Source: Neoconidiobolus thromboides FSU 785
Lineage: Eukaryota; Fungi; Entomophthoromycota
Direction of reading: 5' to 3'
Assembly: GCA_025603075.1 (NCBI GenBank)
Contig: MU626269.1
Location: forward strand, 124,001 to 188,000
Length of the DNA stretch: 64,000 bases
In this document: in pieces, positions 10,750-30,208 of the stretch
How the letters are laid out: each line of letters begins with the position of its first letter
Position numbering within the stretch: position 1 is the stretch's first letter
Position numbers and translations under genes: made by a program
The notes under the pieces: model-generated
Seen by the model: only the letters and a program-made list of their open reading frames with translations
What the model was told of the DNA's origin: nothing
Databases searched by the model: none

Positions 10750-11912
10750 ATGGAAAATAAATTAGCCCCCGCCAAATTAAGTCGATTACCACCAAATGAA
10801 AAAAGCCATGCATTAAGTTCTTTATTTAAGTTACCGAATCCATTTAGTAAGAGTAGTAATAATTTATTAGCTAAAAAAGAGAAAGAAGAAAGTTTTAAAA
10901 TTATAAGAAATAGTCGTCACGATCGAAAAAAGAGTATGGAAGCTAATTATAAATTGAATCCTAATTCCGCTTATTCTCAACCACTTCAACATAGTCAGCA
11001 ATGTCATCAAAGTAAAGAAGTTGAAAATAAATTATTTAAACCAATGAAGTTATCCCCAAACAATGGCTTAAGTCCCTTAGATGCTATTAAATTAAGGGCT
11101 GAAATGGAATTACAAAAAGAAAAATATCATGCCAATAAAACCGTTTTAAATTCAGTTATTGATACTAATGAAACCGAGTACGGATTAGATTTAACTTGGG
11201 CTAAAGAATTAGAAAATATAACTCAAGAATTAAATCAATTTGAAGTTCAAATTGGTGTTGATAAAAGAAAATCCATAGCTCATTTTTGTTCAACAGCTAG
11301 TCCAACCCCACCTTTTTCTCAACCTAATATTAAATATAATAAAAATGCACATTTAAAACCAGAGCAAGCACAAATAAGACCTTCAATTAAATTACAACAT
11401 AGCAATAATAATAGTATAAGCAACATTTCATCATCACCCATAAATTTTCATCGATATTCTAATTATTTACCAAGAAGTAGTAACAATTTAATATTAAATG
11501 AAAACAATATGTCTCCACCCCCAAAGATCAAAAATGCACGCTCTAATCCTAATTTCAAAGAGAAAATCGAGTTTTCGATAGTTACTCCAATGAGCTCGAT
11601 TGAAGCTTCACCTGCTTCTAATTTACAAATGCCATCATTTACATCAAATACTACTATTACTAGTTCTAGTTCATCAAGTTCCAGTTTTAATTTAGTGGGT
11701 AAAATGGAAAGCGTAGAAAGTCTTAAAAGAGAATTAGCTTGGGAAAAAAGAAGTCGAATGACACTTGAAAATCAATTATTAAAAGAAAAAGAGGTAATTA
11801 CTTTTTATTTATTTTTTTGATCATGTTAATGAGTATTGATCTTTCTTTTTAGAAAAATCATATGTTGCAAGAAGAGGTTAGGTATTTAAAAAATTTGGTT
11901 AATAAGAAGTAA
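10750..11912 (+). CDS. Hypothetical Ser/Asn/Pro-rich protein with C-terminal coiled coil (2 exons)
   Basis: 356-codon ORF; GT-AG intron 11794-11852 gives an in-frame final exon KNHMLQEEVRYLKNLVNKK*. Confidence 0.7.
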
Positions 11913-12183
11913 ACCTCATATGAAAGTCTGTTTTTTATGTTCTGGTAATCTTAGATCTGAAATTATGTTATTCTATTGAACTAATCTCTTTCTATTTTAA
12001 TAATATTAATATTTTATTATTATTATTATTATTATTTAATCTTTTTATTTTTTTATTGATGTAATAAATAGTAATATTTTATAAAAAATTGTATATTTTC
12101 AACCAATTAAATTTAAATATGCAATTTTAGAAATTTCCTTGAAGTTGTTTTTTTACAATTTAAATCATCACTTTTTTATTGAA

Positions 12184-13371
12184 ATGAATGAAAACTTAAT
12201 TGAAGAAATTAAAGATAATCATTTAACAAGTGATTCGGAAGAAGAAATTATTAATAATGACGATGGTAAAGTTGAAGAAATTGTAGATCCCTTAGAAGAC
12301 TTTCCATTAGATATTGAGGTAATTTCTTTTTTTAATAATTTAAAATCAAAAATTTAAATTCTAATTTCATTAAATGATTAGGATATTGAGTTAGTTCATT
12401 TAAGAATATTAAGTATTCAAGCTTTAAATCTATCAAGATTTAAAAATTTAAAAGTAGTTTAATTAAATTTAATGAGATTAATAATAATAGTAATACTAAT
12501 CTCATTTAGAATATTTACCTCCGTCAAAATTTATTAACTGATATAGATGGATTACAAGACTTAGACTTATTAACTGAGCTTGACCTTTATGATAATCGTA
12601 TCAAAAAGATCAAAAATGTATCCCATTTAACCTCTCTGACAACATTAGATTTATCCTTTAACAAGATCAAACTCATTGAAAACATATCCACTTTGACTAA
12701 TTTAGAACATCTATATTTAGTAAGTAATAGAATAAGTAAGATTGAAAACTTGGACACTATGAATCAATTAATCAACTTAGAATTGGGTGATAATAAACTA
12801 AGAAAGATTGAAAATTTAGAAAAATTAAGTAAATTACAACAGTTATGGCTAGGCAAAAATAAAATAGTAAAGTTTGAAAATTTGGATATGTTAAAAAATT
12901 TAAAGATATTATCTATTCAATCAAATCGACTTACTTCGCTTCATGGTTTACAAGGTTTGACTAATTTAGAAGAATTGTATGTGTCTCATAATGCTATTGA
13001 AAAAATTGAAGGTTTAGATAATCTGGTAAGTTTTATATTTTAGATAATAATAGATTAAATATGAGATAAGATATTAACTTTGTGTCTTATATTAGCTTAA
13101 CCTACGTGTATTTGATATAGCCAACAATAAAATCAATAAGTTAGAAAACATAAATCATTTAGTTAATTTAGAAGAATTTTGGGCCAATGGAAATCAATTA
13201 GATTCTTTTAAAGATTTAGAAACTCAATTTTCAAATTTAGTCAATATTGAAACTGTGTATTTGGAAAACAACCCGTTACAAAAAGCAAGTCCTACTGCTT
13301 ATAGAAGAAAAGTTAAACTTGCTTTACCTTCCTCTTTAAAACAAATTGATGCTACTCTCTGTGCTTTGTAA
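12184..13371 (+). CDS. SDS22: Protein phosphatase 1 regulatory subunit Sds22 (LRR), 4 exons
   Basis: Tandem SDS22-type LRRs (LDLYDNRIKKI, LDLSFNKIKLI, LELGDNKLRKIENL, LWLGKNKI, LSIQSNRL); LRRcap 'YLENNPLQ...YRRKVKLAL...LKQIDAT'. Confidence 0.92.
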
Positions 13372-13753
13372 TGGGGTAAAACTTGTTATTACAAAGATTA
13401 ATCCGTCAGGAGAGATTACTTTTTATCAAAACTAAATGATAATACTGTAGATTTTATTTTGAGTTTTATTAATTTTATATTATGTTTATATTATAATATA
13501 TATAAAGTTGAACTTTTCTTTCTTATACTATAGTATTTGGATAATTTTTTGTATTTTATTAAGGATATTAAAACTTATATTAAACTTCAATAGCACGATT
13601 AAATTCAAACTAAAAAATGATAGAACACTTTAATTTTAATTTACTTATTAATTTATATCTATAAAATATTAAGATAAAATACTATTATTGATTATAATCA
13701 TGGTCGTATTAAAGCTAATTCTACTAAAATTTACTAATTAATAAAGCTTATTA

Positions 13754-13856
13754 TATGGAGATAATTTTTTTAGTTTTATTACTTTTTGCATCTTTTAAGC
13801 GTTATTTAAGCGGAAAATTTGAGTAAAATTCTTAAACACAAAAATACATCCCGCAT
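13754..13856 (-). mobile_element. MITE-like repeat copy
   Basis: Reverse-complement match to consensus. Confidence 0.85.
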
Positions 13857-14268
13857 GTTATAATAGCTTAGCTTTTTTTGAAATCATTTAAGAAAAGAAC
13901 ATTGATAAAAGTATTAATTATGTATTCTTTTGTTTGTGATTATTACAATGATAAAAACACATTTGTATTGTTTTATTTCTTATTTCTTATTTCTTATTTC
14001 TAAATAATAACGTATTTTTAAGAACTAAACTAAATTCTGCTCAAATTTTCCACTGCTTTTTCGGTCTATTTTTAAGATGGAAGAAGAATTGAAATTATCC
14101 ATTTTAAGCTTTGGATAGTAATTATATAAATTTATGCATAAAACTAGGTAAAAAAGGCAAATATCAATTATACTCAGATTGATTCTATTTAAAATTTGAG
14201 TTTTAATTATTTTTTTACTTCTAATTTATTCTCTAATAAAATTGAGACTTAACATTAAATTACAATAG

Positions 14269-15783
14269 GATGCGTCTTTCTATCCTATTCAAACAAACCA
14301 AGTATTAATTATCGCAAAGTTCTCAGGTGACTATAAATCTTAAAGCGAACATTGTAAGTTTAGGTTATGTATAAAACATTGTTGTCAGACATGCTATAAA
14401 CAAACAGGTGATAGAAATGCCTTAGTTTGCCATATGTGTTGTGAATCCCATCATCTTACCTATTTAAGCAAAATATTATAAGATATTTTTGAAATATAAT
14501 GATAATTCTCTTATTTATTTAAAAAAGTACATTAAATTGTTTAGGTCTAGTAAAAATTGTGATAAATTTTTTTAAAAGGTTTAATAATGATAATTATTAT
14601 ATCATTGAAAAAACAGGGATGTAGTTTTGTATTTAAGAATTTTACTAATAATTTTTCCACTCAAATAGTGCTTAAAAGATGGAAAAAATGCTGAAGCTAA
14701 AAAACATCCCCAAATGCTAAATGTATTTTATGGCTTTGCTTGGAGATTTAGAGCTCAAATGAATTATAACAATATTCATTGGCAAATTAGACTATTCAAA
14801 ATATAACTTTTTTTATTAACTTATTTTTTAGCCCTTCGATGTCAGGTATTCATGAAAATAATAGATGTCCAGGCTATTCAATCATATTAAGCGAAACTTA
14901 TGAGGGGGATGGATATAATGCAAAAAATTTTGTTTAGACTGGTACTAGTGGTCAAAATATTAAGGGGTTACAAACCGCTTCTTAACAATTTAACTCGGTA
15001 AATCTTATTTTAGCTGCTACAATTGATGGAAAACTTAGTATATATGAGTCAGTAGCCAAGGATTAGACTAAAAGCTCATCTATAAGAGTTATTGGGGAAT
15101 TCAATCTTTCAAAAAATCAAAAATATGCACTAAGAGTAGGCTATAGATACGATAATATTTTAGATTAGTCAAATATTGATTGAAAACAGTTTGTAGTGAT
15201 GAAAACGGTGCTAAAAATGTTATTGTGTGACTTTTTCAATTTAGATGCCATGATAATAAATCAGCACCATGGACAGAGGAATGGAAGAGACATAAAATCA
15301 AAAAAAAATCGAATAATTAAACAACTAAGTAATATTAACCCGAATCCTCCAATCAAACTAGATTATAGAATTTCATCTATGCTTAAAACGATATTAAGAA
15401 ACGATAAAAAGAATGGATTTATATGGGAATAAATTATAGCTACTCCTTATAAAACATATAGCGGTTTTTTAGATTCAATTTTATCTCATTTTGTGTGTTT
15501 AATATGTAAGAATGTTGTTAAATTTAGAGGGCCTTATACCTCTAAGTGTAAGCATAACCTCTGCTTAAAATGTGTTAAATCTAAAGTACATGAAAATTAG
15601 AACTATAACTGCTCACTGTGTGTAAAAAAAACCTATAAAGTACCTAATTCAAAAATCAAACTCACAAGAGATAGATATTTTAAAGTTAATAACGATCTTT
15701 CAATTATTCTTAATCAATCAGGATCAGCTTTAATTCAAAGAAGAAAATTATTCATATATAGTTTTTTAATAATAAATACATAG
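14269..15783 (+). pseudogene. UHRF1: Decayed UHRF1-like gene (prePHD-PHD, SRA/YDG, C3HC4 RING)
   Basis: Manual translation: EHCKFRLCIKHCCQTC..LVCHMCCESHHL (PHD); GFAWRFRAQ..IH/CPSMSGIH..YSIILSETYEGD..FV*TG..AKD*TK..IRVI..KYA..GYRYD..KY*..V*LFQF..APWT (SRA); NDKKNGFIWE*..FLDSI..CLIC..CKHNLCLKC..CSLC..VNNDLSIILNQ (RING and tail). Multiple in-frame stops, at least 2 frameshifts, one MITE insertion. Confidence 0.88.
14614..14713 (+). mobile_element. MITE-like repeat copy inside the UHRF1 relic
   Basis: Consensus match; lies between the PHD-coding and SRA-coding segments. Confidence 0.9.
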
Positions 15784-15797
15784 GTTTTATTTCAATA

Positions 15798-15901
15798 TAT
15801 GGGGATGTATTTTTGTGTTTAAGAATTTTACTAGCAAATTTTCCGCTTAAATAGTGCTTAAAAAATGGAAAAAGTAATGAAGTTAAAAAAACACTCCCAT
15901 A
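15798..15901 (+). mobile_element. MITE-like repeat copy
   Basis: TATGGGGATGT...ACACTCCCATA. Confidence 0.92.
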
Positions 15902-16107
15902 TAATTATTAACCTTAATTAATTTTATAACTAAAAAGCAAGTTATATGTTTAAACATTACAAATATTCAAATCAATAGAAAATACAGTAAAAAAATTATT
16001 TAAAAAATCAACCTAATATAAAAGTATTAACTATTGTTTTATTTTATATATATTAAATTCAATATTATTTAATATATATTATGTTACATATACTGACAAA
16101 ATATAAC

Positions 16108-16210
16108 AATGAGGATGTATTTTTGTATTTAAGAGTTTTATTGACAATCTTTCCGCTCAAATAGCGTTTAAAAGATGGGAAAAGTGATGAAGTCAAAAAA
16201 TATCCTCATA
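16108..16210 (+). mobile_element. MITE-like repeat copy
   Basis: Consensus match. Confidence 0.9.
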
Positions 16211-16750
16211 CAATGTAAAAAATTTTGAAATTTAAAATGGTTTTTTATATCTGCTTGTATACTAATTTTTATAAACTTTTTAAATACTAAATTAACTAAG
16301 CAGTTTTTTACATATACTAGATCATGATTTAGTATTTCAAACAAATAGTCAAAATAAACTCTATTTATTATATTATTATTCTTTGAATATAAAACACCAA
16401 ACTTTAGTATAGATATAGCTTGTTTATCATAATAGTTTAAATTTATTAAATCTGGCCCTATTTTTATTTTTATATTTTATCTAAAATTTAAAATTCAAAG
16501 TTATTATCTGATTTTATTCTTCAAGTTAATAATTTCATTAAGTATACTTTCTTAAATAACAATATGAAATTTATGTAATTTATATAGCTTTTTTTATTAG
16601 AAGTTTTTTTATATTTATTTTATTTTTTATTGCTACATTTATTTTATCTTCAAACAACCTTTTTTTAATTACGTATTAAGCACATATATTATATAAAGCT
16701 GTTTCTTTATTAAATATTAATGAAATAGTTGAATTATTGAATAGATATTA

Positions 16751-16853
16751 TATGTGGCTGTTTTTTTTGATTTCACTGTTTTTCCATTTTTTAAGCACTA
16801 TTTGGGTGGAAAATTTATTAGTAAAATCCTTAGACACAAAACACATCCCCATA
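16751..16853 (-). mobile_element. MITE-like repeat copy
   Basis: Reverse-complement match; head-to-head with 16953-17058. Confidence 0.9.
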
Positions 16854-16952
16854 TAATTATCTAAAAATGATTAATAATAATAAACATACTAATGTTATAA
16901 TTTGTCATTAAGAATATAAAAAAAGTTCAAAGTAGTCAAATTAAAGCTATTA

Positions 16953-17058
16953 TATGGGGATATGTTTTTGTGCCTAAGAATTTTACTAATAAATTTTCCA
17001 CCCAAATAGTGCTTAAAAAATGGAAAAACAATGAAATAAAAAAAAAACACTCCCTTAT
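16953..17058 (+). mobile_element. MITE-like repeat copy
   Basis: Consensus match. Confidence 0.9.
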
Positions 17059-17108
17059 AATGGTGTGTTTTTGACTTTATCACTTCTTCTATCTTTTAAT
17101 TAATGTTA

Positions 17109-17160
17109 GAGCGAGGAAATTATTAGTAAAATTCTCAAACACAAAAATACATCTTTATAT
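17109..17160 (-). mobile_element. MITE-like repeat, partial (left half)
   Basis: AAATTATTAGTAAAATTCTCAAACACAAAAATACATC. Confidence 0.75.
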
Positions 17161-17239
17161 TGATTTTTATTTATGTTAAATCTAAAGCCTTTATATTTAT
17201 TAAAAAAACATGTTAAAGCTATAGTTGATAATAATGCTA

Positions 17240-17342
17240 TTTGGGGATGTTTTTATGGCTTCGTCACTTTTTTCATCTTTTAAACGCTATTTGAGCGGAA
17301 AAATTATTAATAAAATTCTTGAACATAAAAATACATCCCTAT
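17240..17342 (-). mobile_element. MITE-like repeat copy
   Basis: Reverse-complement match. Confidence 0.9.
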
Positions 17343-17605
17343 TTACTGATTTTTATTTCTTAATTTCTTTGAAGCATTAATTTGATATATCAGTTAATCA
17401 ATTAAATTTATTATTGTCATTATTGAATTTTGATTTTTTTTGTTTTATTGTAGACAATTATTAAAATTAAGGTAATTACAATGTTTATATAGTGTGCTTT
17501 TTTTTATTGTATTGAAGTTTTCAAAAATTCTACTTTGAAGTTTAGTTATAAAAGCTTGCATTTTGTTTTTATTTTAATGAAAACTAAAATAAAATTAATA
17601 AAACA

Positions 17606-17705
17606 TATAGGGACATTTTTGATTTCATCACTTTTCCATTTTTGAGCGCTATTTGAGTGGAAAGATTGTTAATAAAATTCTTAAACAAAAAAATACATCC
17701 CCATA
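17606..17705 (-). mobile_element. MITE-like repeat copy
   Basis: Reverse-complement match. Confidence 0.9.
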
Positions 17706-18011
17706 TAATTAAAAAATCAATTATTTAAAAAAATGAGACAATTAAAATAAGTCTTTTAGATTAAATATTTTTATTTAGCTTTAAGCTTTTTTAAGTTTAA
17801 CTAATTCCAATCACACAGTAAGGACTTATAAATTTAAAAACTTAAAATGTGGATTGATTTTTAAGTAAATTCTGCAATCAATTTGAACATCCTTATATTA
17901 CTGTCATTTTCAAATAAAAAAGATAAAACTAAATTAGAATATTCATTTGACAAGTTATGATAAAAAGCTCAATAAAAACCTGATTTCAAAATCAAAACAA
18001 GTAAATAAATA

Positions 18012-18102
18012 TATAGGGATGTATTTTTCTAAGGATTTTACTAACAATCTTTCCACTTAAATAGCGCTTAAAAATGGAAAAGTGATGAAATCAAAAAAAA
18101 AA
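18012..18102 (+). mobile_element. MITE-like repeat copy, small internal deletion and eroded right TIR
   Basis: Consensus match. Confidence 0.85.
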
Positions 18103-19711
18103 TTCTTACCTTTTTAGAGATTTATAAAGGCACACTTTTACATACACAATATATTGTGGTTCATTGTTAAATATAAAAAATGAGTAACCCCTAGCCATGT
18201 TTTAATTATTGTGTTAATTATATAGATCAATCTTTAAATAATATTTTTCTACCACTTCAAGTATTAATTATATAATAAAACCTTATGAAGGAACTGTAAT
18301 TATTAATTTTAAAAGTTAAAAAATCGCCTTTCTAAAAATAATACCCACATAATGACTTAAAACAATGAACATATTAACAGTAAAATCGTTTTTACTATGA
18401 CAAATTATATAGTTACTAATTATTGTCTATTTGAAATTTTATATCACTGTTTTGTTTTTTTGCTTGATACTAGTATAAAACTATACTATCTATAACAATA
18501 TTAACTTTAAAATAAAGATAAAATTGAGGATCAAAAGTAGCTCATTAGTAAATTACATATCATTATTTTTTTTAAATTTGTCCGAAGATTTAAGTAATAG
18601 ATTTGATTAATAGTTAATAAAAAAGGTGCACACGTCATAGTAATACAAAATAGCTAATAATTAGTAATTAGAATAAAAAAACTAGTTTAATTTATAATTT
18701 TATTTTCATAATTAAACGTAGTAAATATTGTTTGAGTTTGTTCATGATATAATAGGTTAACTTTAGCAAATTTAACAGTATCCATGTTTTTGAGATGCCA
18801 TCTATATAATAATGATTTATTAGCATCAAAATAAGCTGATGTGAATAAAGTAATATTATTTCAGTAGTCAATTTGTTTGTAATTTGTTAATATTTTATTT
18901 TACTTTAAACTCTGGTGGATTCTAAGTGTTTGATATTAAAGAGCTAGTGTATTCTGCAAATATAATATTGTATACTATAAAAGTAACATTTTAATCAAAA
19001 TATAACAAGTAAGGGTTATATTTGAATCTAGATCCTTAATTAACTATAATTAGTTAAATATTAAATGGAACGATTTGTGCTAATTAATTGGTATAGTTAA
19101 AAATGAGATTTTAAATAGCATAGCTTAATAAATAGTAAATGACTTTATTAGAACTTATATAATTATTTAAATCTTAAAATTAAAGTTCAATATTTTAATA
19201 CAATGTTCTAAAAATAGGTTGTTAACAAATTTAGAAACATAAATTATAAACCGGATTATGTTACTTCTGCCTTGATGTTAATTTTTATACTATTAGAACG
19301 TTCATGTCATACCATTAAGAGATTGATTAAAATTGTATTGCCCACAAAATAATTCATATATATGCATGTAAGGATATATATTAAATCACTCAAAATATTT
19401 GTAGTTTATAGAGTAAATTTAAAATAGCTATTTATCATTAATATTTATATCACTTTCCCCTACCAAACAGTGTTTAACCCTATTTGACTTTATTAACTTG
19501 TTTAATAAAAATAAAAAGGGAATCCAAAAAGCTAATTAATTAGATTTAGCGAAAAAGTTATAAGTAATTTAAAAAAATTTTAAAAGTACAAATTTAAATT
19601 CTTTGATGTTCTTATGATTTGAAAACAGACATCAAAAAGTAATTGAGTAAAAGGTATTTAAAATGGAGAAAAGAAAGAAAGATGAAAATAAAAAGTTAGA
19701 CAATCATAAAA

Positions 19712-20594
19712 ATGAATAAAGACGAACAAATAGAGCAAACTAATACTGATGAAACCGAATGTAAAAAAATAGTCCCCTTTTTAATTAAATTAAGAAGGTA
19801 ACCTATAAACTATCTCTAGTTAAGAAACTTATTAACATTACTATTTTTAGTATACTTGATAGTGAGAATTTCAAGTCTATTATTAACTGGAATGAAGATG
19901 GTACTCAATTTGAAATTCATGACCCTGTTCAATTTGAGTCTAAAGTTTTGCCCGGCAATTATAAAAGTCAAAGAATTGAGACATTCTTTAGGCAATTAAA
20001 TGTAATTATTAACTCTTTATTTTTATTACATAAATATTAATGTCTATTTAGATTTATAATTTTAAAAGATTGAACTACAAACGATATCATGATGGCAGTT
20101 TATATAGGGTTTTGGCTTTTAAAAATGAATATTTCAAAAAAGACGAACCTAATTTAATGTATAAGATTAACCGCAAACAAAACACGAGAAAAAGTGATAA
20201 AAGCACTTCTCCTTTAGCTAACGAAGAACCAAATCCAGTGTACCCAAACACAGCTTGTACAAATATAGAACCATTTGATGACAACTGGACTTATGATGAT
20301 ATTGTTAACAATCCCAATGAATACATTCAGCCTGATTTTAATCCAGTTGATTGCTACATATACTCACAACCATATATTGATACAAATGTGATGATACCCT
20401 ATGGTCTAATATATACCCCAGAGACTATTTCTCCATTATTGGTTCCTACATATATACCAACTTTCGCTTCTGATCCTATTAGTCCCACATCAGTACCAAA
20501 CTATTACCATGCATTTACTTCAGAATCAATTAGCCCAGCTTCTGCGCCTCTACATTATGATTACTATGACTTTGATCAACAGTCTAACCCATAA
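19712..20594 (+). CDS. HSF-type DNA-binding-domain protein (3 exons)
   Basis: Introns 19798-19850 and 20002-20050 give VPFLIKLRSILDSENFKSIINWNEDGTQFEI..VLP..FFRQLNIYNFKR..FKNEYFKKDEPNLMYKINRK. Confidence 0.85.
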
Positions 20595-28066: not shown

Positions 28067-30208
28067 CTATACATATTTTGATATAATCGGTTCCATAACA
28101 ACAAAACAATCCTTAACTAAAGCCCACCTCTTAGATCCAAATGATAATCTCTTTTTAAGGTTCAACACAAATTGTTTAATTTTTTTGATGACCCAGTCAG
28201 GCAATACTGACTCTTGATGTCTTCGTAATATCATTAGAAATACTAGTATCATTTGTAAATTGGAATACCAAAACCATGGTGTTAATATCATCTCTAATTT
28301 GCCATTAAAGCTGCTTATGATAGTGTCCATCATACGGGAACAATAAAAGCACTTTTCAATCTTATTTAGTTGATGATATTGCTGGAATAAAATTTGGTTA
28401 CTAAACAATATCTCAAGTTTGTTCTTATTAGTCTCATTCTTGCTATTAATTTCTATCATTTCATTACTGCCAATTTGAAATTTGTTGATGTCTATTAAGT
28501 AAGAAAAAAAGTATATATTCAATATGTTTAATAAATAATCGTTTTTTGTTGGTAAATAAATAACATGGTCTTTTGATGATGGACAATCAAATTCGGGTAA
28601 TTTTAAATACCATTTTAAAGCTGCCGTTTCAAGGATATCATATGATTTAACTTTGTTGACACTGTTATTAGCATCGCTATGATTGGTATTATTTTCTCCA
28701 TGATTAAATTCCGCCAATACGGTTTTAAAGAAAGACGAGTTTGGTATTTTGAATTTGATCTCTTCTTTTAATTTATATTTCTTGTTTAAATTATCCATTT
28801 TTGACATTAATTTCATTAGTTTACAAACCGATTGGAAATATTTTAAACTGTTTTCTCCCTTAATTTGTAACATTTCTGGTACTTCAATAATCTTATTTTT
28901 ATCTTCTATATTCACCATAATGATACTGTCATTGATATTGGGATAATCAATTAGCCCTTCTGCTCCAATCCAACTCAATCTATTTGTACAATGAGACATT
29001 AATACTTCATTAATACTTAATAGCCATAATGTCCGTGCTATTATCTGTCGATTTGTTTTGCTACGAAAGGGACATGACTTAGAAAAATAGCCTAACTGCA
29101 TGGACATCCGATGTGCAAGTCCTCCAAAGAACCACGCATTACACAAAATCGAATTGGACTCAGTACTATTGAGATGTAAACCTATTAAGGTACATGCTTG
29201 TATTACGTTTAAATTTGGCTTCAAATAGCACTTTTTAATATAAAATAAGATTTTGTTGGAAAAATACTCATCAAACTTGTTAGCTAAATTTCGATTGGGA
29301 TAAAAAGAGGAACCGCATAAACAAATCACATATAATAGAGTCAAAAAGGGGTAATTGTTGGGCTTACAATGATTTAATTGATAGTAAAATGATGTTGGTG
29401 ATATGATAGGATAAAAAGTGTTCAAGTAAATAAAATATAAATTAATTACTTCATTCTGGTATGTTTTATTAATCACTGTCTTTGATACTGGGAATGTTGA
29501 ATTAAATAACTTTTTAATTGGATTGTTATTATTTAAGATATTATTCAATATATTACTATTGGTATTACTCTTATTTGTTAGATTATTATAATAATTATTA
29601 TTGCTATCATCATTGCCATTTACTCCATTATTAGTGTTATTCAGCAACTTTAAATTAATTGAAACATAGCTTGTTGCTAACGATGGACCAGTGTAAAAAT
29701 AATCTCCCTCCTCATTAATACTGATTTGTGCTTTACTATTATTTATGATTGACAGTTTGAGCATCTGTTGAATTAAATTTAAGGCTGGATTTAATTGAGG
29801 TTTGTTCAATAAGCTGAATATGAAGTTGGTATCAATTTTATTATAATTTTCTTTGTCAACTTGCAATTTAGCTAATGTTGTCGTTAATTGCTCATTATTT
29901 ATACCTGTACCATAGATAATATTATTATTTACATTACTATTTCCATCATTCGCAGGTAATATCCTCACAGTAGGGAATAGTTGCTGTTGACTTCTATTAA
30001 CATTATTTAGATTATTGATAATCCTATTATAAGTGCATGGATAGTTTAAATTGACACAATTAGAACAACGGGGGTATTCTCTGCTACATTTAACCTTTCT
30101 TAACTGACATACGTCGCATACTTTAGCTTTAGGACCCCTTGGTCTTTTAGGTAAATTGGATTGATGGATATTGATACGTTCAATAGACACTTTGTTTCTT
30201 CTACCCAT
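28067..30208 (-). CDS. Zn(II)2Cys6 fungal transcription factor with middle homology region
   Basis: CDVCQLRKVKCSREYPRCSNCVNLNYPC; YF..LNTFYPII; AWFFGGLAHRMSMQLG. Confidence 0.92.
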   Translation of the reverse strand: MGRRNKVSIERINIHQSNLPKRPRGPKAKVCDVCQLRKVKCSREYPRCSNCVNLNYPCTYNRIINNLNNVNRSQQQLFPTVRILPANDGNSNVNNNIIYGTGINNEQLTTTLAKLQVDKENYNKIDTNFIFSLLNKPQLNPALNLIQQMLKLSIINNSKAQISINEEGDYFYTGPSLATSYVSINLKLLNNTNNGVNGNDDSNNNYYNNLTNKSNTNSNILNNILNNNNPIKKLFNSTFPVSKTVINKTYQNEVINLYFIYLNTFYPIISPTSFYYQLNHCKPNNYPFLTLLYVICLCGSSFYPNRNLANKFDEYFSNKILFYIKKCYLKPNLNVIQACTLIGLHLNSTESNSILCNAWFFGGLAHRMSMQLGYFSKSCPFRSKTNRQIIARTLWLLSINEVLMSHCTNRLSWIGAEGLIDYPNINDSIIMVNIEDKNKIIEVPEMLQIKGENSLKYFQSVCKLMKLMSKMDNLNKKYKLKEEIKFKIPNSSFFKTVLAEFNHGENNTNHSDANNSVNKVKSYDILETAALKWYLKLPEFDCPSSKDHVIYLPTKNDYLLNILNIYFFSYLIDINKFQIGSNEMIEINSKNETNKNKLEILFSNQILFQQYHQLNKIEKCFYCSRMMDTIISSFNGKLEMILTPWFWYSNLQMILVFLMILRRHQESVLPDWVIKKIKQFVLNLKKRLSFGSKRWALVKDCFVVMEPIISKYV

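Follow-up and report, generated by a model that had tools for sequence, protein, structure and literature searches.

In animals, it is well established that UHRF1 recognizes hemimethylated CpG through its SRA domain, ubiquitinates histone H3 through its RING domain and recruits DNMT1. Plant VIM/ORTH proteins follow the domain order PHD-RING-SRA-RING, and the UHRF1-like protein of Cryptococcus neoformans has no RING. DNMT1 and UHRF1 have been lost together many times among eukaryotes, and such losses are usually seen as the absence of the genes rather than as fossils of them.

A supplementary table of Funabiki et al. (2023, eLife, PMC10538959) lists DNMT1 (KXN74494) and UHRF1 (KXN73339-41) for Conidiobolus coronatus, and a UHRF1 (ORX90637) for Basidiobolus meristosporus; since C. 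coronatus is listed with UHRF1, a fungal UHRF1 is not in itself new. According to a 2026 review (PMC13297926), C. neoformans possesses a stripped-down UHRF1 homologue that aids DNMT5. Lineage-specific loss of DNMT1 and UHRF1 appears in the account of braconid wasps and other Ecdysozoa in PMC10538959, and dim2 pseudogenes are described for Zymoseptoria tritici in PMC8016269. We found no literature linking Neoconidiobolus thromboides with DNA methylation.

Here we analyse a 64-kb stretch of DNA (the window; positions ~124,001-188,000 of contig MU626269.1, assembly GCA_025603075.1) from N. thromboides FSU 785, an insect-associated, entomophthoralean fungus of zygomycete grade (Zoopagomycota), and not an animal. 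On its forward strand, 14344-15783 is very probably a non-functional, putatively unprocessed relic of a gene of the UHRF1/VIM family. As in human and mouse UHRF1 (PDB 3bi7, 2zo0, 3fl2), the SRA precedes a C-terminal C3HC4 RING that has a helix in front of it; a PHD-like finger stands before the SRA here too, and animal UHRF1 is the best solved-structure match of three pieces of the relic. It differs from animal UHRF1 in that a UBL and a tandem Tudor were not found, only half of a PHD-like finger is present, the SRA-RING linker is ~50 residues shorter, and stops, frameshifts and a MITE interrupt the gene. Plant VIM/ORTH proteins combine a PHD, an SRA and a C-terminal RING, but the relic shows no trace of a RING between its PHD-like part and the SRA. 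The C. neoformans protein is a functional fungal SRA reader of hemimethylated CpG, whereas the relic is dead and has kept its RING. The UHRF1 homologues of Entomophthoromycotina belong to the same fungal group and gene family as the relic, but theirs are annotated protein-coding genes; those of C. coronatus and B. meristosporus are presumably its live counterparts. The losses in braconid wasps and other Ecdysozoa and the dim2 pseudogenes of Z. tritici resemble it in that a methylation gene is lost or fossil while relatives keep theirs; the relic differs in lying in a zygomycete-grade fungus and in carrying no RIP signature.

Genomic setting and layout of the relic

The window has a G+C content of ~25% and uses the standard genetic code, and its long clean ORFs include those of a Zn2Cys6 fungal transcription factor, UPF1, a formin and a lipase. 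The relic adjoins SDS22, which the NCBI annotation models at 12184-13371, and the public annotation of GCA_025603075.1 contains no gene models from SDS22 to the HSF gene at 19712. RNA contigs place the SDS22 poly(A) site near 13456, so that the gap to the relic is only 0.8 kb. SDS22 itself, at 12159-13456, is well expressed, and its introns (12317-12379, 12454-12509 and 13025-13094) are confirmed by RNA contigs. Rfam searches of 12000-19000 returned no RNA families, and an MCB/E2F-like element was sought upstream of the relic without success.

Two other ORFs of the window deserve a brief description. That at 10750-11820 (+) encodes a serine/asparagine-rich protein of 356 aa, 100% identical to an N. 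thromboides FSU 785 protein at NCBI and annotated with 367 aa as K502DRAFT_362634; among 5.8 billion proteins, no homologue besides its own record was found at E<=1e-5, and on this search it is a lineage-restricted gene. For the Zn2Cys6 ORF at 28067-30208 (-), which encodes 712 aa, the exact product is absent from the records of the assembly collection, and any public model at this place must differ from the plain ORF.

A translation check recovered all of the peptides reported in an earlier note on this DNA, each in its proposed frame and place, and the resulting layout is given in Table 1. The gene is disabled by 7-9 in-frame stops and two 1-nt frameshifts, to which an inserted MITE and a GC splice donor are added. 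The frameshifts (15157-15161 and 15289-15297) each fall in a homopolymer run and offset one another. The earlier note had also proposed a 50-nt intron with a GC donor. Its borders are exact, with GC at 14782-14783, AG at 14830-14831 and a joined codon tg|c that encodes Cys; splicing, by contrast, was not seen, since RNA contigs run through it.

Table 1. Parts of the relic and copies of the associated repeat, in window coordinates
Feature	Position	Strand	Remarks
PHD-like half zinc finger	14344..14478	+	CQTC-x11-CHMC-x4-H-x2-Y, then TAA 14479
MITE-like element, ~100 nt, very high copy	14605..14712	+	repeat family D1; between PHD-like part and SRA start
Putative SRA start, frame 2	14714..14781	+	..YGFAWRFRAQMNYNNIH; translation, without independent database support
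Intron-like segment, 50 nt	14782..14831	+	GC..AG, T-rich tract; joins frame 2 to frame 1
SRA core, frame 1	14832..15159	+	broken by TAG 14935, TAA 14983 and TAG 15064; Pfam and PDB matches
Frameshift 1, frame 1 to frame 3	15157..15161	+	1 nt lost in T-run; ..GYRYDNI / FRLVKY-TGA
SRA end, frame 3	15159..15296	+	..LVKY*, V*LFQFRCHDNKSAPWTEEWKRHKIKK; stops TGA 15177 and TGA 15228
Frameshift 2, frame 3 to frame 1	15289..15297	+	1 nt gained in A9 run
SRA-RING linker	15298..15432	+	..LRNDKKNGFIWE; ends in stop TAA 15430
Pre-RING helix, C3HC4 RING, C-terminal tail	15433..15780	+	TAG 15598 between ligands 6 and 7
Terminal stop	TAG 15781	+	end of C-terminal tail
MITE copies	14605-14712, 15793-15898, 16105-16209		and 21 more places in the window

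Homology of the RING, SRA and PHD-like parts

Homology was tested piecewise between the stops, the pieces being searched apart against Pfam profiles and against all PDB sequences (177,635). The piece at 15433-15597 matched several RING families in Pfam (best E ~3e-4) and, in the PDB, the RING of UHRF1 together with its preceding helix (E 0.002-0.02; residues 700-738 and 712-749 of full-length chains), and a feature search of a protein atlas scored it at 0.96 against C3HC4 clusters. Reading the sequence, we found eight of eight RING zinc ligands kept, and the earlier claim of a RING holds: it is a C3HC4 RING with all ligands and a UHRF1 RING match at E=0.002. When the RING piece was compared by phmmer with 1.84 billion representatives, the only proteins returned were three with multiple RINGs (P0001-P0003), none of them a UHRF1 relative, and a metagenome scan with the same piece gave no matches.

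For the SRA, the piece at 14830-14934 matched SAD_SRA (PF02182) in Pfam at E=0.029 over profile positions 28-59, scoring 14.6 bits where the gathering score is 30.7, and it matched only three sequences in the PDB, all of them the SRA of UHRF1 (residues 33-64). The top PDB match of the piece at 15067-15165 was likewise the UHRF1 SRA, at residues 120-146, aligned over SIRVIGEFNLSKNQKYALRVGYRYDNI. The PDB E-values of these SRA pieces, 1.4-1.6, are weak singly, and every database match to the relic falls individually under the family threshold. The two SRA matches are nonetheless colinear, lying 82 codons apart in the relic as compared with ~87 residues in crystallised UHRF1 constructs, and we estimate at ~1e-8 the chance that two independent short pieces, in order and ahead of a RING, would both have one of the ~6-20 UHRF1 SRA entries among 177,635 sequences as their top match. 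The identification of an SRA in the earlier note is thus borne out by the SAD_SRA match at E=0.029 and by two colinear pieces that match the UHRF1 SRA in the PDB. Four of the nine pieces of the relic gave no signal, namely GFAWRFRAQ, 14986-15063, LFQFRCHD..PWT and the tail at 15601-15780; PDB support is accordingly absent for LFQFRCHD..PWT, the SRA end in frame 3, on its own, and a protein atlas search with the 35-aa SRA piece returned noise only.

Further upstream, the piece that the earlier note had read as a PHD finger has the spacing C-x2-C-x11-C-x2-C-x4-H-x2-Y, with Tyr at the expected position of the next Cys. Its best matches were the zinc finger of KIN17 and the PHD of KDM5D (E=0.5, weak), and searches of Pfam and the PDB with 14344-14478 gave no match to the PHD of UHRF1. 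What stands of this claim is therefore the PHD-like spacing of a half finger, but not a UHRF1-specific match; the PHD is doubtful, the SRA and the RING are secure. The PHD-like part is separated from the SRA by ~45 codons of non-MITE DNA without a RING trace. UBL and tandem Tudor domains are absent upstream, both from translations of 13441-14340 and from the eight pieces of that stretch searched against Pfam. The description of the gene as having an animal architecture therefore proved overstated: a UBL and a tandem Tudor are missing, the PHD is half a finger and UHRF1 homologues were already listed for fungi. Because UHRF1 is already known in fungi, this subphylum included, such an architecture would not set the locus apart.

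Given that the DNA is AT-rich and was read in three frames, we considered whether short Cys-rich or SRA-like peptides could have arisen by chance. The weakness of the individual E-values (0.029 in Pfam, 1.4-1.6 in the PDB) speaks for this, as does the fact that several alignments of the earlier note have no support of their own. Against it, the matches of three independent pieces converge on one protein, colinearly and on a single strand, all eight RING ligands are kept, and nine neighbouring control pieces (eight from 13441-14340 and one from 14468-14572) were blank, matching no Pfam family at E<=1. We consider chance similarity very improbable, and a relic of a UHRF1-family gene remains our reading of the locus.

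Lesions, transcripts and age

To follow the lesions across isolates, we used assembled Logan contigs, not raw reads, from four DNA runs (X1-X4) with three organism labels; the relic is covered at single-copy depth in the four runs. Across the 14675-15800 contig, X1 and X2 show no differences, X3 shows 6 and X4 shows 15 bases that differ. The stops other than that at 14479 and the lengths of both homopolymer runs are identical in all four runs, and independently assembled contigs thus confirm these stops. At 14479, TAA reads CAA (T>C) in X2-X4, so the stop is private to the reference lineage; the nonsense change is polymorphic among isolates and probably arose as C>T in the reference lineage. 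X4 also has indels within the relic (4 nt deleted at 15323, 1 nt inserted at 14520), which indicates that decay is still ongoing. In the runs labelled organism D, the exons of SDS22 differ at ~1 position in ~1.2 kb, as against 9-10 differences in 0.6-0.7 kb of the relic.

In four RNA data sets, SDS22 reaches depths of 100-534 and its three introns (63, 56 and 70 nt) are spliced. RNA from the relic is confined to the SRA part, from 14772 to 15349-15459, at depths of 5-11, and neither the PHD part nor the latter half of the RING is covered. Relative to SDS22, relic RNA amounts to ~1.4% in the run of the source organism (X5) and up to ~11% in X6. Contigs of both runs (14773-15349 in X5, 14772-15459 in X6) retain the proposed intron; an intron-like GC..AG segment of 50 nt at a frame change would suit an unprocessed pseudogene, but it stays unspliced in the RNA contigs. 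The region 13863-14466 is silent, with no coverage in the RNA data, and the weak signal over the relic is therefore probably RNA and not DNA carry-over.

These data bear directly on whether the gene might still be alive, by way of readthrough, reassigned TGA or TAG, programmed frameshifts or the correction of assembly errors. By the alignment of the earlier note, three stops, TAG 15064, TGA 15177 and TGA 15228, would stand at conserved Trp positions of UHRF1, and both frameshifts fall in homopolymer runs and cancel each other, as such a gene might have it. Yet all three stop codons (TAA, TAG, TGA) are found in the relic; the neighbouring genes are long clean ORFs in the standard code; all lesions but the stop at 14479 are common to four independent Illumina-type assemblies; the RNA is scarce and unspliced; and the PHD is truncated and a MITE inserted. 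A living gene is extremely improbable on this evidence. A non-standard genetic code with TGA and TAG at Trp positions, considered separately, was ruled out, as the neighbours use the standard code.

The stops at 15430 and 15598 could be derived from CAA/CAG or GAA. Under AT-biased mutation, nonsense codons arise most often from Trp codons and from CAA, CAG and GAA. That most of the identifiable nonsense changes are C:G>T:A (e.g. TGG>TAG/TGA) would also fit a RIP-like killing of duplicated UHRF1 genes, as with dim2 in Z. tritici (PMC8016269). The relic, however, has a TpA/ApT index of 0.95 and a (CpA+TpG)/(ApC+GpT) index of 1.24; these are the values of live genes, and there is therefore no repeat-induced signature. 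Its GC is not depressed, and AT-biased mutation alone gives stops made by transitions. Classical RIP is not known to occur outside Dikarya. We regard a RIP-like origin of the lesions as very improbable, and read them rather as those of a UHRF1-family gene no longer under selection.

The G+C content of the relic, 27%, is still coding-like when set against the 19-21% of intergenic DNA. We simulated decay from 4,266 live codons of the window under an AT-biased model and reached the observed stop density, taken as 7-8 stops per 350-430 codons, at ~0.10-0.15 substitutions per site, a figure that comes from a crude age model. This estimate is ~10x the isolate divergence of 1.1-1.5%. The relic is fixed across the sampled isolates and predates their divergence, yet it is not ancient.

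Possible methylation footprints and possible loss of the maintenance module

The MITE-like element that interrupts the relic is ~100 nt long, with a consensus that begins ATATGGGGATGTATTTTTGTGTTTAAGAATTTTACTAAC; the 64-kb window contains 24 copies. Its depth summed over Logan contigs exceeds that of the flanks by a factor of thousands, RNA contigs include copies as well, with depths in the hundreds to thousands, and no Rfam or tRNA match to it was found. The ratio of observed to expected CpG is ~0.57 throughout the window, in genes and spacers alike, with GpC at 1.17 and TpG/CpA at ~1.0, which is not raised. Among the 24 MITE copies, two CpG dinucleotides show 32% transitions, compared with 16% at other C/G sites. 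This CpG pattern is suggestive rather than decisive: it may faintly reflect CG methylation in the past, or a context bias.

By analogy with animal UHRF1, the SRA of the once intact gene product would have recognized hemimethylated CpG, and its RING would have ubiquitinated histone H3 and recruited DNMT1. We suppose that selection ceased and that G>A and C>T nonsense changes and two 1-nt homopolymer indels followed, with further decay through insertion of the MITE, a GT>GC change of the splice donor and loss of half of the PHD finger. The relic would then yield no protein; a weak, unspliced transcript covers its SRA part only.

Such a relic may well belong to a broader decay that affects the DNMT1-UHRF1 maintenance module of N. 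thromboides. It is possible, and we put this forward tentatively and at less than even chances, that the species recently (~0.1-0.15 substitutions per site) lost the whole module, with UHRF1 paralogues and DNMT1 decaying in parallel while C. coronatus keeps them. Alternatively, the relic might be no more than a dead duplicate, with CG methylation maintained by DNMT1 and an intact UHRF1 paralogue encoded elsewhere; three UHRF1 accessions are given for C. coronatus, and the family may be multi-copy in the group. We think this rather unlikely, and return to loss of the module as our tentative view.

In itself, the locus is an ordinary, unannotated pseudogene of the UHRF1 family, a fresh instance of a known event that alters no concept. 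Its value hinges on the absence of an intact UHRF1 or DNMT1 in N. thromboides, and it is mainly useful as a possible sign of a lineage shedding its genes for CG-methylation maintenance. A UHRF1 relic that is still readable, and fixed in the sampled isolates, would point to loss at a fairly recent date in a fungus that diverged early and whose relative retains both UHRF1 and DNMT1. Comparison of N. thromboides with C. coronatus offers a test of when the loss took place and of how it affected transposon control and base composition. If loss of the module is true, the two species would form a rare fungal pair for dating the loss of methylation and for following its aftermath, such as a burst of MITEs and a genome of 25% GC.
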